Assembly (NCBI GenBank): GCA_977017575.1 | Contig: CDRNVI010000052.1 | Span: 248,001 to 312,000 of the forward strand | Direction: 5' to 3' | DNA length: 64,000 nucleotides | Source: Paramoeba atlantica | Lineage: Eukaryota; Protista; Discosea | The notes under the pieces: generated by a model | What the model saw: only the letters and a program-made list of their open reading frames with translations | The model's database searches: none | Told to the model about the DNA's origin: nothing | Position numbers and translations under genes: made by a program | Part shown: piece by piece, positions 43,638-55,097 of the stretch | Position numbering within the stretch: the stretch's first letter is position 1 | How the letters are laid out: each line of letters starts with the position of its first letter

Positions 43638-43676
43638 AATCTTTAACGATAAAGATACAGTTTCTGTACCTTGTTG
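43638..43676 (+). other. Spliced-leader-like 39-mer AATCTTTAACGATAAAGATACAGTTTCTGTACCTTGTTG
   Basis: Contains TAACG, the kinetoplastid SL core ACAGTTTCTGTAC and terminal TTG; identical 38-mer at 53781-53818 (-); not followed by a GT donor. Confidence 0.75.
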
Positions 43677-43692
43677 AATTATTTTCCTTATC

Positions 43693-44340
43693 TCATACCT
43701 TTCCATATGATACCATATATGGTGTTTCCTCTTCAGCCCTCACCTGTGTAAATGCAAAAACTGGCAACGTCCGTTTTTGTAACGATTTGAACTTTTTGTC
43801 TGTGTTCAGTGGGGTCATGTTTCGTCTTTTGGAGCAGGATTTTTCTTCCAAACCACGGAAAAAAAAGGAGGCGTTTCCGTCAGACTGTTGAGAAGCTTTT
43901 TTCGCAAGCCAGTCCGATGTGTCATTATGTGGGTTCCCTTCATGCCCCCTAACCTTGATGATGAACACGCGTCGGTCAGCTTCTAATTGAAAGCAGACAC
44001 GATGTATCTTTGATAAGAGGTCCGAATTTTCAAATTGGTGAAACCCGAATAGAGAAAACCTGTTCCGAATCACATGGAAAAATTCCCATACATACGCAGA
44101 GCCTGTGTGAATGATAATATCCTTCTCATGCTTCATTGCCATCTGCAGAGCCTCATAGACAGCATAAAGTTCCGCAGCTGTTATTGTGAGTGATATTTCT
44201 GACGGAGGTTTTAGTCCTACAAGTGTCTTTTCTACCCGATTGCCCAATAACACAATACCGCAACCTGATGAAATTCCTGTTTTCGTTGTTCTTAATGCGC
44301 CGTCTGTGTATAAATGCAAGGAAGTGAAAAGGCACCGCAC
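43693..44340 (-). pseudogene. RNase HI domain of the LINE
   Basis: YTDGA...AAELYAV...IHTGS (third acidic residue lost)...ENSDLL...GHEGNPHNDTSDWLAK. Confidence 0.85.
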
Positions 44341-47876: not shown

Positions 47877-48626
47877 GATTTTGTCAACATTCATTGGTAA
47901 AAGACTTAAAATCGCCATCCCGTTATACCCCTTAACGGCACTCATAAAATATAGATGAATATTCATGTCACCCAGATAGAGCCGACAGTGGATAACGGCT
48001 CTTCGCTTTCAAACGACAAACGCGTTTCCTGCAGGGTCATTATGGTAACACCGTAACTCCGCATGAATGCCACGGCCTGGTGTAGACGATAACTGCGACG
48101 TAGAGCAAATGCGTCCGCGGACTTGCATTTCAATGTGTCCACATTTAGGGTGCTTACCACAAACCCCACTCTCATAGCTTGAATCTTGGGTCTCTGCTCT
48201 CGGGCGCCACGCCGAAAACAGGTTTTGAGCTTCCGATTGCGTCCGTGCAATGATTTTGGGAGTATTCCAACCCTGCCGCCCAGCACATGGACACGTTCAT
48301 CTCTCGGTGGAAACGGGAGGAGCCGTCCATTCATCAAGTCGTACTTAACAAGCCAATTAGACCCGCCAAGCGAAGAATGAACAACCCCTTCCCAAAGTGC
48401 AATGCGTTCGCGGTAGGCCATGCGCCAAACAACAGCCACACGTTTTCCAACTCCAAAAACCATCGACATCTGCAAAAGGGCCTGCTGCCGGAGTTTTATT
48501 ACACCACCCCTCTGCTTTGGTTGCAAAAAGAGGTTGCCCCGACCACACCTGGCCGTTAGGAGTTTGTCACGAACTTCCAACAAACCATCGAACGGTCCGG
48601 AGGCCTCCGCCATTTTGTATCAACGT

Positions 48627-48662
48627 ATTAATACAAAAAGTGATCTTAATACAAAAAGTGAT
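48627..48662. repeat. Orphan two monomers of the 18-bp satellite
   Basis: ATTAATACAAAAAGTGATCTTAATACAAAAAGTGAT, between the LINE 5' end and a CRE RT fragment. Confidence 0.9.
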
Positions 48663-48773
48663 GAACAACCTAGGGAGTGATAACCTCGCGTTCTGTAAGA
48701 TGGACCCGCGAAACGCATTTAACAACGTAAATAAAAGACTTTCCAGAGTTATCGCCATGGGTAGAATGGTGCT

Positions 48774-49033
48774 CCAAATCCAATCCAAATCATTCCGGAT
48801 TGCTCCGGATGTTCACTGGCAAGCCAGACCCTTCACAGACAGATTTGGAAGTTCCGAGGCCGACGTCCTCTACCAGTTTCCGCTTTTCCAAGGCGGCACC
48901 AACGTGCTGTTGCCAACACGCTGCGTCGGTGGAAGTATAGGAATATTGCATAAGTATACGAATATTGCATAAGTATAGGAAAATTGTATAAGATACCTTC
49001 TTATATATAATCCTTCTTAAGGAAGAAGGAGGT
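48774..49033 (-). mobile_element. SINE-A 3' half plus AT-rich filler containing three 19-bp repeats
   Basis: TSD TAGAATGGTGCT at 48762-48773 and 49034-49045. Confidence 0.88.
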
Positions 49034-50005
49034 TAGAATGGTGCTACTCACACCCGAGCGTTCTCACCTACGGAAATCACTTCATATCATCTGCGGAAGG
49101 TGTGCAACAGGGCTACCCCCTAGGTCCACTCTTATTCTCCCTAGTCCTCTCGAACGCCACCGAACAAATAGCATCACGGGCTAACCTAGACTCGCAGCTC
49201 TTTAGTATTTGTATGACGGGATCCTTATGGGGTAGGCGGGTGAAGTCAGAAAGGCATTGGACGTGTTTTCTGAGTTCGGCCCTAAATGCGGTTTGTTCTA
49301 AAATCCAAAAAAGCCCATGTCACTGAACAATTCCCTGAAATCCCAGCGGAGAAAATCCATGTTGACGGAAACTTTGATATCCTCGGAAGTCCGATTGGAT
49401 CTGCAGAGCATTGCGCGGAATTCCTTCTCTTAAACGCAATAGAACCAGCATTTTATTATTTTTTGTGTGATTATTTTTTTTTTTGTTTTTTTTTAAGGGG
49501 GGAGAAGTATGAATCGCGGCATTGCCTCTATATTTTGACCCAGTAGACGAACCAAGTAGGTCCATTGGGGGGGTATACGAGTTGAAAACAAGCAATCAAA
49601 TTAGCAATTCTTTTTGTTTCCACAGATGTACCTTTTGTTTTTTCTCAGCCCAAAACTAGCAATTTAATCTCCCCTAAGTATATACTACAAACAAGAAACA
49701 GTAAAAACTAAAACAAGCAATACAGACCCAATCCATTCGCGCGTTCCGGACCGGGTCTTTCGACCACTCCACGGCCTGACTTGTGAACCCTTCCCTTGCT
49801 ATATGGGAGGGCGCAGGCGCGGGCCTGTGTCGACAGCGACACGGTCGCGAAACAGGATGCTGGCCGACGGGGAGGAGATTCACTACCCGTGTACTACCTC
49901 ACTTGGGGTACCTAGCCCTCGCGGGCTAGGCGTGAGCATAGACTCTGTCGACCCGACCAGCACCCGTGGCCTATGTCACCACCATAGGATCCGTTGGGTC
50001 CGACA

Positions 50006-53000
50006 CTATCCTTCCGTGATGGGCTCGTTCGGGTCGGGCACAGCCATGCGTGTAACCATCATACGAGCCTGTGCTCGCATGAGGGTCACATTCAATTCGG
50101 CATACAATTTATTTGTAGCCTGCTCTTCCGTAAGGGTCCCATTTGAGGCCTGTGCCCGCCTCTTTCCGACTCCCTTTAGAACGGACGTTGCGCTCACGCT
50201 CCAGGAGCCATAGCTCTCTACCACCATGGCTGTGAATTCATGGCCTGCTTCCTCAGCCTCCAACCGTTGGTGCACCTTTTTTTCCGCGGCGTAGTGCTCG
50301 GCGAATGATCCTGCAGCTACCCAGCTAGCGTTACGAACTTTGTCCGTGTATTTAGTTTGCTGAGCGTGGGTAACTGCAAAATCAAGGACCATGCCTTTAG
50401 CCTTGGAATACGTGGGGAGAAACACATCGCCTGGCCTGGTGAGCCCCCCTCCGGGACCTCGATTGCCAAGACTGTGCTCTCGTTGGGGTGCCAAAGAGGC
50501 ATGCCCGCAGAAGGAGGAAAAATGTTCAACCAGGGAATTGTGCCGGTTTATTATACCTTGTCCATGTTTGCACACGAGTGCGTGATCCCCTTCAGGACCC
50601 AGAGGGAGTTTGCATTCATCCGAGGGACATGGACGAGTTTCTCCGTATACATCCACCCCCAACCACCATCGACACAAGGTTCGAAACTCCGCGGGTTTGA
50701 ATGCATAGCCCAGGTCCTTCGATGGGGTGACGAATTCCCAGCTGCTAGCCCCTTTCCTTGATTGTGATACCCATCTGGTTCGCGTTCGCGTATCAGCGGA
50801 ACAGTATGCTATATTAAACTCCCTTTCCCCTATAGCGCGGATGATATCTTTCTGACGTGGGATGATACTTTCGTCCCATTCTGGCGGGTCAATATCTATG
50901 TCAAGGTCAGCGCTCAACGGCGGGTCAGCATCTAAAAAAGGTCCGGTGTCTGATGGCTCGCGGGCTGTATCGACCTGTGTGGAAGAGTGAATGGGTGGCT
51001 TTGGGGGAAAAGAGGGATGTGATCGGTCGCGCTGTTGGGTGGTGGGGCAAAGGAAACGACCCGTTTCGGGATCTACGAGAGTGCCTCCGGCTTTTGCGTT
51101 CACGTCGTTGACGGCTGGTGAAAAGCCTTCCGCGTCCAGTGGATTCCATCCGTTCTTGCTTGCTGCGAACACCACAGATGCTACGTAAGCTGAAGACGAG
51201 TACATTTCCGATGAACGCAGACCGAAACCTCCGTGTCTCTTCAGGCGTTGGATCTGAGCGCGGGAAGGGGCGTTCAGTGGGCAAAGTATTTCTTCTGCTG
51301 TGCTCAACAGTGAATTGTCTAGATGTTCGCAAACGCGTTGTATGCATTGTGGGGGTGTTGTACGTAGGGCGTAGACCAGTTGACAAAAGCCAGCACATTG
51401 TCGTATCAGTGCCATGGCGACCTGCGGGTCCTCAATTAAACTGGAAGCAACTAAAGTTTCTTCTGCTGGTTCGATCGCATTGGTCATGAGGTATTCGGCG
51501 CAGTGTTTGTTGGATCCGATAGGGCTTCCTAGGATGTCGAAATTTCCTTCTGTGTTTTGCTTGTCTTTTGGTATATCTGGGAAAAGAGATGTTTGGTGTG
51601 CAGATGAGGGTAGTGTGATGATCTCGCATTTCTTGCTATTGAGGTGTAGTCCCTGACCTGGTCCGAGGTGATCAAGTATGTCGAGGGCTTTTCTTACTTC
51701 TTCTGCTTTCCCTATAAAAACTCCATCGTCTAAGTACCACAGGTTTAGAAGAAGTTCCGTGTACGACTGAATTTGTTTGGTAACCTCCAACATGACTAAG
51801 GAAAAGAGAAGAGGACCGAGGGGATCGCCCTGTTGTACCCCTTCCGAGGACGGTACGAAACGGTGCCCGTAAGTTAAGCTACTGGTTTCGACGTAGCACC
51901 ATTCTACCTATCTGGACAATTCCGGGAAGTGCTCTCTGGTGAGACTGATGAATGCGTCACGGCTAACGTTGTTAAATGCGTTGGACAAATCAACTTTGCA
52001 TAAAACTATATCGGAATTTGTTGTGTCAGTGTCCATTGCAAGCCTACAAAGGTGAATGATACGTTCTGCCCCTGCTCGGGTGGCCACTCCATATTGTTGT
52101 GCTTCAAAGTATTTCCCCGCTTTCATTCGGACACTACTGCATGCGGCCTTGCTCACTAACCGACGAATAGTCTCCCCCGCTGCGATAGGGCGAACGTCGT
52201 TTTCCCCCTTCTTGAGCGCACATAGTCGCGCACCTGCGAAATATGCTTGTACTTCGATGGGTGCTTTGCCAGAAAGAAGATGATTAGCTAGGTTTGTGAG
52301 TTCCTGAAGCGGGTGAACATTCTTGTCTTCGTAGGAAAGAAGCGCGGATTGTAAGTGTTCCGGGCGGAGACCCATCGTACCTGCTGAAGATCCTCGACGA
52401 AAACTGTTTATGGCTACTTTAATATCGGATTCTTCGAGGTTCAAATGTTTGACATGTGGTGGAGGGTCGGCGAGGGCTTCCGTAGTAGTTTGACGTGCCG
52501 GATGCTTCTCCAACAGCTTCGCATATGTTTCTTCGTTTTCATCTGCCATCGGCGCTGCGGTTAAGGCAGCCATACCTCTAGAGAATTCACCTTGTCTGAC
52601 TAGAAGTTCTGCGCGGATGACGGCTTTCTGGGCCTCATGTTGTTCCGAAATGGGGTCAGGGTTTCGTTGTCGTCTATTAGCGGCTGCCTCTTTCCACAAC
52701 TGAGTGTATTCCTTTGCCATCCATCGCTCCATGCACTTTCGAACGTGGGATGAGTATGCCATGTAGCCTTTACGCCCTCCGCGTCGAGGGGCCGGTAACA
52801 CACACTTTGGGAGCATGGCAAGGAGTGTCCATGTCGCTACTGAGTTTTCTTGTACTGCTGCCTTCAAAGCGCTAGTTAAGATCTCCGCCCACAGCTGACG
52901 GCATCGGTGGGGCACGTCTTTACATGTGCTCTTCGCGAGTGTGCAGACACTTGCCAAAGTAGGTAATTCGGCGGTTTCTGTTACGATGGAGTGCTGCGAA

Positions 53001-53494
53001 AAAATATCTACTGACATTTGTGCTGCTTGACTTGATTGACCGATGCAGGTCTTCGGGTGCGTAGTTTTACGGTTGAGCGTGTAGTGTTTGCCGCACGTTT
53101 CACAAAGGAACTTGCCTTCCGCTGCCCACCATGCAGCCGGGACGCCGGTACTGTGGTGGTACGCTACGTGGTTATAATATGCTTGCCAAGACCCTCCATG
53201 TGCAATCGTGCGCCAAGCGCATCCTTCAGCAGGACAGATGCGGTGTTTGGGAGCGCTCTGCGGAAGTGGCGGGGGCTTGTCGCTTCCGTTTCGTGGGGCA
53301 TATCTGTTGCCAAAGTCTTCGCGCCTACCGTCCGATTGTGCTTCGGAACAACCAGTTTCGCTAGTCATGGGTTTTGTGCCGGAGGAATGCTTTGGAGGTG
53401 ATTGGATCTGGTGGGCTGGCTGAGAGCGTGTCGGCGTTTGTTCGCCGAGGGTGCCGTCCTTAATAGTCTGTTGGTGTTGCCTTCGTGTTTCCAA
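50006..53494 (-). pseudogene. CRE-like polyprotein: zinc fingers - RT - CCHC - restriction-like endonuclease, one in-frame TAG
   Basis: ORFs 51908-53494 and 50006-51793 are in the same frame, joined by TAG then VEWCY..QQGDPLGPLLFSL; WYLDDG; CPSDECxxxxxxxGDHALVC; RHN; RPGDVFLP..LDFAVTH..KK. N-terminal CPAEGC..HVAYHH and CETC motifs. Confidence 0.92.
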
Positions 53495-53750
53495 GGGTCG
53501 CCTAGGTGATCGGTTATCCGTCTTTGAAACTCCTTTGATCCCATCCGCATTGCGCTGTTGACGTGATATTGCATCCTTCAGTGCAGCGTTGATTGCTGGC
53601 CCTGATTTCAGAGTAGAAATACTAGCTGCAAGGTTGGCTGTCGTACCCTTTCGTTGTACTGCGCAGTGTTGTATTTCCTCATTCTCGGCTAGGTGGTGTC
53701 CCGTGTCCGGTGTTTCGCGGTCGTCTGATTTTTTTTCAGCGAGGCGTAGC

Positions 53751-53776
53751 CTAAAGGGGAAAGGAAAAAAGAAAAT
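53751..53776 (-). promoter_or_regulatory. Polypyrimidine tract plus AG (candidate trans-splice acceptor)
   Basis: Reverse complement TATTTTCTTTTTTCCTTTCCCCTTTAG upstream of the CRE ORF. Confidence 0.45.
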
Positions 53777-53780
53777 AATT

Positions 53781-53818
53781 CAACAAGGTACAGAAACTGT
53801 ATCTTTATCGTTAAAGAT
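53781..53818 (-). other. Spliced-leader-like 38-mer at the 5' end of CRE element A
   Basis: ATCTTTAACGATAAAGATACAGTTTCTGTACCTTGTTG, preceded by GG and the TSD. Confidence 0.75.
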
Positions 53819-55097
53819 CCTTATTTTTTGTGTGATTATTTTTTATTTTTTATTTTTTAGAACCAGCACGTGAGACCCTTTCCGCTGTTGGAATAACCCC
53901 TCAAGTCGCTATGGCCTTAATTCGCCAGTGCACGGTCTTTTGCCAAATGGTCTATGCCCTTCGAACTACGTCTCCGCAAGCCCTACCCCATCTGTGCAGT
54001 CTTCTAGACGATAGCGCCCTCACTGCTGTAGAGCTCGCACTCTTTCCTTTGGACCCGCAAGCACGTGACCAAATTCAAAGTCGGAAACGCCAGGGGGGCT
54101 TTGGTCTCAGATCTGCCTCTCTCCAAGCAACATCGGCTTATGTTGCTTCTGTAGCACACGCTGCCGAGGAGGACAACTGGGACCCTACAGACGCCGAAGG
54201 TTTCGCCGCCTCGGCGCAGGACTTCAACAACAAAATAGGAGTGACCCTTGTGTACCCCAGCACAGGTCGCATACCCAAACAAAACCCGCGACCGGACTCC
54301 GGCTCACAACGCATCTCACCCCCGAACAGGAGACGTCGAAGAAAATGCTACGCAGCATGGCGGTAGACGGCTCCACGGAACCGGAACTGGTGATTCCCAA
54401 GCAACAGCAATTGAGTCAGGCAATTGCCGAACGTTATCACGCTGGTGGTTGGGAGTGGATATTTGCCCAGAGGATAGTCCTTGTCCGGCAAAAGGATGCA
54501 CGCTACCCCTTCAGAGAAACGGAGAACACGCGCTTTGTTGTAAAAACGGTCATGGCCTGATCACCAGACGTAACGCCATTTGCGATCAATTTTCTTCTTT
54601 CTGCAGCAAGGCAGACATTGCGCCCCAGAGGGAAAAAAGCTTGGGAAACCGAGGCCCAGGCGGTGCCCTCACCAGACCCCCGCGACCTCTTTATTCCCAA
54701 CGACGCTCTCGGAAATGGTATGGTGTTGGACTTTGCAGTCACCCATGCCCAGCAAATAAAGTATCTGGACTCCGTCCGTATTGCTAGCTTGGTGGCTGCA
54801 GGATCCTTCGCTGACCATTTTTCCGAATCTAAGAAGAAACAACGCCAGGAAGCGGAGGAGGCCCGGTTACTTTTCACTTCCATGATCGTTGAGTCCTTTG
54901 GCTCGTGGAGCAGTAGCGCCATGTCGGTCCTGTGGAAGGTCGGAGCGCAGCGCGCAAATCGCCGAAAGGTCTGCTCACTGAAACAAAAGCTCGGAATGAC
55001 TTGCTCAACGAGCTCAATATCACACTCATGCGATCCCAGGCGAGGATGATGGTCTCTCGAATGACTGTAATCGATCCCAACACGCCCTCAGAAGGGC

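Follow-up and report, generated by a model that had tools for sequence, protein, structure and literature searches.

A retrotransposon copy of about 4.4 kb was read directly in the sequence at positions 49456-53844, on the minus strand of the window, i.e. the whole 64-kb stretch of DNA analysed in the present study. The host is a kinetoplastid-type protist, and the copy belongs to a young family of R2-like LINEs, herein referred to as F1. From the 5' to the 3' end of the element, the following features were recognized.

53821-53844, minus strand: 5' copy of the target-site duplication (TSD), 24 nt, exact and A-rich (repeat comparison)
53819-53820, minus strand: extra GG ahead of the SL head (sequence reading)
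53781-53818, minus strand: 38-nt copy of the host spliced leader (SL) exon, 37/38 against the SL genes
53753-53780, minus strand: F1 leader, AATTATTTTC and then a pyrimidine tract, 100% identical in other F1 copies
53751-53753, minus strand: deletion junction with an apparent TTTAG (alignment to sister copies)
53041-53240, minus strand: two Cys/His zinc-finger-like motifs (translation read by eye; no Pfam match)
51551-52213, minus strand: reverse transcriptase (RT) core (Pfam RVT_1, split by a nonsense codon; alignment of the family profile with the R2 RT)
51908-51910, minus strand: in-frame TAG, which is TGG in six other copies
50340-50630, minus strand: CCHC motif and restriction-like endonuclease (RLE) with RHN, E, RPGD and D-F-A-V-T (alignment of 28 homologues and R2)
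49495-50005, minus strand: 3' UTR, long form (comparison with other copies)
about 49480-49494, minus strand: A-rich tail, A9-C-A10, running into the TSD (sequence reading)
49456-49479, minus strand: 3' copy of the TSD (24-nt exact direct repeat)

The anatomy described in the earlier note, namely a TSD, GG, an SL-like 38-mer, a pyrimidine leader, a frame for RT and endonuclease, a 3' UTR and a tail rich in A, was confirmed. The two copies of the direct repeat are identical over the first 24 of the 38 nt compared, and the TSD is 19-24 bp in length, as four or five A's at the start of the 3' copy may instead be part of the tail. The sole mismatch between the 38-mer and the genomic SL exon is a T for A at position 2. 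Downstream of AATTATTTTC, the leader contains only pyrimidines, and the next A and G are found at 53752 and 53751, respectively. A single reading frame extends from approximately 53751 to a TAG at 50006-50008 and is interrupted by the in-frame TAG listed above. Alternative poly(A) sites are used in the family, with other copies stopping approximately 100-150 nt before the 3' UTR end of this copy, and the last ~490 nt of the 3' UTR are common to many other repeats. A 13-nt SL core occurs twice in the window, in this element and at 43657 (0.07 occurrences expected by chance), and no SL gene is present within these 64 kb. The A-rich 3' end, the 24-bp TSD and the existence of 5' truncated sister copies are signs of target-primed reverse transcription, by which the element was inserted into an A-rich non-SL site. 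The RNA template opened with the host SL sequence, directly ahead of the family leader, and the proposal that this copy was made from such an RNA and integrated outside the SL genes is borne out.

The copy is 99.2-99.4% identical to its F1 sisters and is dead, with the start codon lost and a nonsense codon present through a TGG-to-TAG change at 51908-51910. At 53751-53753, 234 nt found in other copies (L032:1267-1500, including the ATG) are absent, and a single A (53752) stands in their place. This deletion is private to 49456-53844 among the copies compared, and the loss occurred either during copying or afterwards. The apparent TTTAG acceptor at 53751 was created by the deletion; hence, the polypyrimidine-AG sequence previously taken for the element's own splice acceptor is really a scar. 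In intact copies, a pyrimidine tract and an AG lie one base ahead of the ATG, and these constitute a candidate acceptor only.

The F1 protein and the SL genes of the host

The intact F1 protein comprises 1321 aa, with zinc-finger-like motifs, an RT, a CCHC motif and an RLE. Pfam RVT_1 was matched on both pieces of the open reading frame, and a phmmer search against PDB returned R2 proteins as the only matches. The F1 family profile matched R2 structures with an E value of 1e-28 over two stretches, the second of which aligns the CCHC/RLE region to the C-terminal CCHC/RHN/E/KPD/D region of R2. Seven residues, C1120, H1130, C1134, H1144, E1165, D1182 and D1197, are conserved without exception in 28 homologues. 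The two N-terminal Cys/His motifs are visible in the translation, without a Pfam zinc-finger match. These alignments indicate that the protein is R2-like, with a LINE-type RT and, towards the C-terminus, a CCHC motif ahead of a PD-(D/E)XK endonuclease. The best named homologues are sponge proteins (29-42% identity), and no trypanosomatid protein was found among the named matches in the best 120 homologues, most of which are unnamed. For the copies that start at element base 242, an alternative 5' module was considered; the candidate was rejected, as they represent a single 5' truncated insertion that was later duplicated on contig C17.

The sequence of the host SL exon was established using 35 promoter-bearing genes, which are arranged in tandem arrays, and the question of whether the host SL is related to the 38-mer was settled by the 37/38 match to these genomic genes. 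No interruption was seen up to exon base 27 in any of the 35 genes, and 34 of them continue into the intron, although collapsed arrays could hide further cases. No CRE-type insertion at the classical SL-exon site was thus present in the 35 promoter-bearing genes, and the search for element insertions in SL genes yielded one fusion, located after base 38. At this locus (C41:280834), a complete SL promoter and an exon with an AACT start pass from exon base 38 straight into the leader of F4, a sister family of F1, and the F4 copy is interrupted 1.3 kb in by another element. The SL array on contig C74 shows a spacing of 7.3 kb versus 2.6 kb and may hold insertions between genes. In search of related species in which the heads could be compared with the host SL, a metagenome scan for the SL core plus leader gave no match, and a scan for the 3' half of the SL returned one contig, which contains an SL gene with an identical exon and without the element; no SL was seen in two 40%-identical homologues from other samples. 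The leader start was also considered as an Sm-like site, and this candidate was dropped, as no clear counterpart was seen in the SL RNA gene.

SL heads and the SL/leader junction across families

Other full-length F1 copies share the same SL head. The head is not peculiar to F1: heads consisting of the SL plus AATTATTTYC are found on roughly ten related families of LINEs, and 631 candidate sites were counted in the genome. The first 10-13 leader nt are common to these families despite only 54-62% identity between their proteins, suggesting that the head and the leader start are under constraint. No report of SL-headed LINEs was found in the literature searched.

Positions 3-38 are unchanged in a biased sample of 38 heads, and bases 1 and 2 vary by copy (AT, GA, TA, CA, GT, TT, CT and others). 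Among other copies, the head is preceded by a variable number of extra bases (0-2); these bases, including the GG at 53819-53820, either lack a template or derive from copying of the cap. At position 2, most heads have T, compared with A in 35/35 SL genes, and clear A-type heads also exist (L017, L058 and several more). Leader truncations that abut the SL exactly were observed in L039/L047 and L060. In addition, an unrelated Gag-encoding element contains an internal SL copy with T at position 2; this SL copy was seen in one copy of the element only and is absent from two sister copies. Given the SL copy of the Gag element, T at position 2 may indicate that authentic SL RNA was copied.

A trans-splicing origin had been suggested for the SL/leader junction. 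In 45.7 Mb of genome, no leader copy with an AG acceptor in front was found: the search for the leader preceded by A, C or G and then G gave 5 matches, all in unrelated AT-rich contigs, and the leader preceded by a non-G base gave 37 matches versus 40 in the control. The leader thus hardly ever follows a base other than G. Head-less masters were consequently rejected, with the non-G-preceded leader not above control and the AG-preceded leader absent. Because the SL is attached to each leader copy of this genome and an AG precedes none of them, the junction is a heritable part of the element, and ordinary fresh trans-splicing cannot make it in a genome without an AG-fronted leader. The suggested origin was therefore not borne out.

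Possible routes to the SL-started RNA and comparison with known systems

LINEs that inherit the SL as their first 38 bases raise the question of how a capped, SL-started RNA is made without an acceptor. Herein, we tentatively prefer an own-initiation module, in which the head would act both as an SL mimic and as an internal initiator, similar to the Pr77 module of L1Tc/ingi. The head and the conserved leader start would together form this 5' module, and a capped transcript would start at, or next to, head base 1, so that the element RNA would resemble a trans-spliced mRNA without being one. The RT would copy the two cap-proximal bases badly, and we propose that the variation in the first bases and the additional G's might result from this miscopying. 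The conserved 10-13 nt leader start, the stability of positions 3-38 and the variability of positions 1-2 are among the points in favour of own initiation. However, the known kinetoplastid SL promoters lie upstream of the exon, and the SL-headed copies have no upstream SL-promoter sequence. Moreover, strict inheritance would not predict the mixture of T and A at head position 2, the leader truncations exactly abutting the SL fit re-joining better than inheritance, and T at position 2 also occurs in the SL copy of the unrelated Gag element.

In a different account, which we regard as somewhat less likely, the junction is inherited and the 5' end is renewed in each round by template switching. 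A read-through RNA with the old head would be copied, and the RT would switch by homology to one of the abundant SL-bearing RNAs of the cell, or jump to a free SL exon, and run to the modified cap, fixing a new 5' end. R2-type enzymes are known for template jumping, and bases 1-2 look stochastic, T as well as A being found at position 2; the constancy of positions 3-38 in the biased sample of 38 heads, the T2-type SL copy inside the Gag element but missing in its two sister copies, and the exact meeting of truncated leaders and SL in L039/L047 and L060 are all consistent with switching. The 234-nt skip with a one-base filler in 49456-53844 also resembles a template switch. Nevertheless, the conservation of AATTATTTYC after the SL is left unexplained, and copies with upstream flank would be predicted where no switch happened, of which none is established. 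The cap-4 chemistry of T. brucei would also predict difficulty at leader positions 1 and 4, and not at position 2. A further account, which appears improbable, places a few masters directly behind an SL promoter and exon, transcribed as SL-started capped RNA, with the dispersed copies, including 49456-53844, as their progeny. The SL promoter and exon continuous with the F4 leader at C41:280834 could correspond to such a master, and this arrangement parallels that of SLACS, whose transcription reportedly begins at the start of the SL gene (Patrick et al. 2008). However, this locus is the sole one of its kind among the 35 promoter-bearing SL genes, belongs to F4 and not to F1, is itself interrupted, and could equally be the product of recombination between a head and an SL gene; one master would, moreover, be needed for each of the ten or so families. 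Ordinary trans-splicing in each round, from head-less masters in which a pyrimidine tract and an AG precede AATTATTT, would make the SL-headed copies dead ends, as dinoflagellate retrogenes are. Every kinetoplastid mRNA receives the SL, but the families are young, some being 99-100% identical, and an AG-fronted leader is nonetheless absent from the 45.7 Mb, such that this account is close to refuted. Taken together, the results argue, on balance, for a guild of R2-like LINEs with a heritable SL 5' module and an acceptor-free junction, the cap-proximal end of which would be re-created in each round by the element's own start or by an RT switch.

The mRNAs of kinetoplastids arise through polycistronic transcription and trans-splicing, and, to our knowledge, two types of Pol II promoter are known in these organisms, the SL gene promoter and Pr77. 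If true, either route of renewal would represent an undescribed way to obtain a translatable, precisely ended RNA where Pol II promoters are scarce. The answer would bear on what the SL needs for initiation, cap modification and translation, on the completion of 5' ends by R2-like enzymes, and on the rise or loss of the SL-gene-specific lifestyle of CRE/SLACS, for which the C41 fusion might represent an intermediate stage. In addition, the copy-to-copy differences at head bases 1-2 may naturally report on RNA modification near the cap.

Among the known systems, CRE elements occupy one fixed position inside the SL exon and are confined to SL arrays. The copy at 49456-53844 is not inserted at this position: unlike the CRE clade, it targets an A-rich tract or tail and carries the whole 38-nt exon at its own 5' end, and the SL genes of this host are uninterrupted within exon bases 1-27. 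The view in the earlier note of a CRE that left its SL niche is therefore unproven, considering both the sponge proteins as best named relatives and the SL genes free at the classical site. The LINEs of the CRE clade (CRE1, CRE2, SLACS and CZAR) contain zinc fingers, an RT and a restriction-like endonuclease in one long ORF, with a poly(A) tail and a TSD (PMC12278014), and these traits, together with a link to the SL and an SL-started RNA, are shared by the F1 copy, in which the zinc fingers are putative.

The F1 element resembles R2 in the fold and order of the RT, CCHC and RLE and in the untemplated bases at 5' junctions. R2 is site-specific for rDNA, co-transcribed and excised by an HDV-like ribozyme, and host (28S) bases from upstream are present at the 5' end of some R2 RNAs. 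In F1, by contrast, the host-derived 5' sequence is inherited at non-target sites, and an Rfam search over the initial 800 nt of an intact copy (L032:1100-1900) detected no HDV-like or other ribozyme family, which is a weak negative.

In dinoflagellate retrogenes, the retroposed copies begin with a DNA-encoded SL (PMC5585692, PMC6050394), and F1 likewise shows a DNA-encoded SL heading a retroposed, tailed copy. The dinoflagellate SL derives from the normal trans-splicing of cellular mRNAs at AG sites, leaving truncated tandem relics joined at the AG acceptor of the parent, whereas herein the carriers are LINE families, the junction has no AG parent, with no AG-fronted leader genome-wide, and the module is propagated. 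Pr77 of the trypanosomatid LINEs acts as an internal promoter for Pol II and is bound by TBP and SNAP50, which are factors of the SL gene promoter (PMC8190864, PMC1874656), and Pr77-led transcripts are unspliced and poorly translated (PMC3383444). Unlike the SL head, Pr77 is not an SL and belongs to APE-type LINEs. A Pr77-like module is expected to start transcription at its first base and to include an HDV-like ribozyme. Nevertheless, both are short 5' modules common to several retroposon families, which for Pr77 (L1Tc/ingi/NARTc/RIME/SIDER) include autonomous and non-autonomous members, and, by likeness to Pr77, the SL head might have promoter activity.

Structure of the element and of its sister copies

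Direct reading of the window (contig C52, 248001-312000) bore out the layout proposed in the earlier note, namely a tailed retrotransposon that begins with a copy of the host spliced leader (SL), termed the head, and lies between 24-nt repeats. All features are on the minus strand.

Features of the window element (49456-53844)
53844-53821, minus: A-rich 24-nt repeat, 5' copy
between 53821 and 53818, minus: GG between the repeat and the head
53818-53781, minus: 38-nt SL copy (head)
53780-53753, minus: 28-nt leader, starting AATTATTTTC, the remainder pyrimidine only
51910-51908, minus: in-frame TAG
50008-50006, minus: terminal TAG of the single long frame
between 50006 and 49479, minus: 3' UTR of ~510 nt, then an A9-C-A10 tail
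49479-49456, minus: identical 24-mer, 3' copy

A genome search with the element revealed near-full-length copies of its family, F1, on contigs C44, C92, C9, C48, C17 and C1 (98.8-99.4% identity). The sister copies without 5' truncation all begin with the same head and leader, which removes one ground on which the earlier note would have dropped its reading, namely full-length copies lacking the head. Intact sisters encode a protein of 1321 aa, and several different poly(A) sites are used as ends among F1 copies. Alignment showed that 234 nt of the sisters (locus L032, 1267-1500) are missing from the window element, with one A in their place. The loss takes in the final 14 nt of the 5' UTR together with the ATG and the first ~72 codons. 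The 'TTTAG|G' formerly taken for the element's own splice acceptor, near 53751, is the scar of this deletion. In addition, six sisters read TGG where the window element has the in-frame TAG, on both sides of which the Pfam domain RVT_1 was found. The window copy is therefore dead twice over, through the deletion including the ATG and through the nonsense codon.

Outside the 24-bp duplication, direct reading revealed an 11-nt direct repeat (53868-53858 / 49450-49440, minus) enclosing the A-rich target, which suggests that this target is what remains of the tail of an earlier insertion that was truncated almost completely. Window 47980-50653, which includes the 3' junction of the element, recurs at 99.85% identity at the end of contig C8 (293466-296139). 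This second copy reflects either a haplotig or a recent segmental duplication and is hence no independent insertion. Upstream of the transposon-rich part, very long frames of up to 6085 codons are open on both strands of window 1-38400, which indicates a putative giant tandem repeat array.

Host SL genes and heads across the genome

SL genes were counted only where a 38-nt exon starting AACTTTAACG lay behind the shared, invariant promoter region and ahead of an intron starting GTATGAGAAGC. This gave 35 genes: contigs C97 and C107 carry them as tandem arrays of ~2.56 kb, and C74, C11, C3 and C24 have smaller groups. The head of the window element matches this exon at 37/38 bases, the sole mismatch being T for A at position 2, and its identification as the host SL therefore stands. 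T at position 2 was absent from every SL followed by GTA. The genes on C74 (104149-121512) are spaced 7.3 kb apart, compared with ~2.6 kb elsewhere, and something of ~4.7 kb may lie between them. An environmental metagenome contig (Ga0316204_10168667) carries an SL gene with a different upstream region; because its exon and intron start are identical, a close relative of the host organism probably occurs in nature.

The 3' half of the SL followed by GT occurs 449 times genome-wide, and the SL genes account for only 35 of these occurrences. In one readable type (loci L014/L015, ~466-1020, sense), SL bases 11-38 plus GTACATTTTGC and what follows make up an insertion of ~550 nt within the sequence coding for the endonuclease of a CRE-like element, which has an internal deletion and an (AGTTGA)n tail. 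In the other types, GT but not GTA comes after a complete head.

A search with the 71-nt head region gave 631 candidate sites in the 45.7-Mb assembly. Of 57 distinct contexts at the loci that were read, 32 have AATTATTT immediately after the SL; beyond this leader start, about ten different downstream sequences each reach, within 25-45 nt, the ATG for one of a set of related proteins of ZnF-RT-RLE type (zinc finger, reverse transcriptase and restriction-like endonuclease). Approximately half of the heads immediately follow a long poly(A) run, in many cases belonging to the tail of a different element, which points to A-rich tracts and tails as preferred targets. A second head, with the leader AATTATTTTCC, follows an A-rich run at window 43638-43700 (plus); only ~60 nt are shared with other loci before opposite-strand sequence of another element begins, and the 150 nt upstream are similar to sequence flanking the head at locus L028. 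Elsewhere (L032:1150-1200 and L018, and for example C1:55095 and C5:57298), a complete head is immediately preceded by an incomplete SL stretch covering bases 1-13, 1-16 or up to base 22. Such stretches may have arisen by insertion of one element into an older head, or by template switching.

Origin of the head and its variable 5' end

In 38 full heads, a sample chosen by similarity, positions 3-38 were identical to the SL gene throughout, whereas position 2 was T in 30 and A in 8, position 1 was other than A in 7, and 0-2 extra bases, often G, preceded the head. Among the A-type heads, two are clearly not located after poly(A); a third belongs to the C41 copy, which lies behind an SL promoter. 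In the first 100 places of the genome-wide listing, AT dominated as the first two bases, and GA, TA, CA, GT, TT, CT, TC and AC were also observed. In two heads, leader truncations adjoin the SL exactly. Owing to the variable positions 1-2 and the extra bases, the 5' end looks as if every event rebuilds it imprecisely, which is what copying up to a cap should produce. An internal SL also occurs 29 nt upstream of the gag ATG in a single copy of an unrelated terminal-repeat element (L022, minus), whose Gag-like protein has a CCHC knuckle. This SL too has T at position 2, and two other copies of the Gag element from another public assembly (L074:2740-3000, L075:740-1000) lack it. Thus, T at position 2 may be a mark of copying authentic SL RNA rather than a LINE-specific mutation.

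If the SL were spliced on anew in each round, master copies with a pyrimidine tract and AG before AATTATTT would be expected. The leader start followed any base but G at chance level in the genome (37 occurrences versus 40 in a reversed control), and the five occurrences after A/C/G then G were all in AT-rich contigs dissimilar to the elements; candidate AG-preceded masters were therefore rejected. Since no such masters were found in the genome, the SL/leader junction is inherited as DNA, and canonical trans-splicing is a very improbable source of the head. Contigs C140, C153, C169 and C201 (L067-L070) show no similarity to the elements and have a G+C content of 26-34%, and the assembly may include a second organism.

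The element was made by target-primed reverse transcription of an RNA whose first bases were SL; its SL/leader junction is inherited, and its 5' end is prone to error. Herein, we tentatively prefer the proposal that the head and the conserved leader start would together form the element's own start module. A close rival, possible though rather doubtful, is that a read-through RNA is copied and that the enzyme switches within the head onto a cellular SL-bearing RNA, which sets the end. Masters resident in SL genes are an improbable source. The one example is on contig C41, where, at 280834, an entire SL promoter and its exon, which has the genuine AACT start, are joined at exon base 38 straight to the leader of the sister family F4 in a CRE-like element (C41:280720-282230; L064:8720-10000, L065:1-230). 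It is the only such fusion, no SL intron lies within 11 kb downstream, and after 1.3 kb the F4 copy is broken by a further SL-headed element, itself 5' truncated, whose head begins at SL base 19. Either the SL promoter may drive transcription of this fusion as a master, or recombination between a head and an SL gene may have produced it.

Element class and comparison with known systems

Compared with solved structures, the window protein matched R2 only, and a profile from 28 homologues aligned with R2 proteins (E 1e-28) over both the RT and, as a separate stretch, the C-terminal CCHC/RHN/E/PD/D endonuclease region; on these grounds, the element is an R2-like, RLE-type LINE. The best 120 protein matches, mostly unnamed, included no protein named as trypanosomatid, and the closest named relatives were sponge hypothetical proteins (29-42% identity). 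No report of SL-headed LINEs was found in the literature searched, which describes dinoflagellate SL-tagged retrogenes, the SL-gene-specific CRE clade and Pr77. The earlier note had assigned the element to the CRE clade, whose defining habit is to insert into the SL exon at one set position (PMC12278014). In contrast, the SL genes here are uninterrupted through exon base 27 in 35/35 cases and on into the intron in 34/35, and the window element does not share this habit. The proposed role of the head and leader start as a start module draws on the analogy of Pr77, which binds the SL-promoter factors (PMC8190864).
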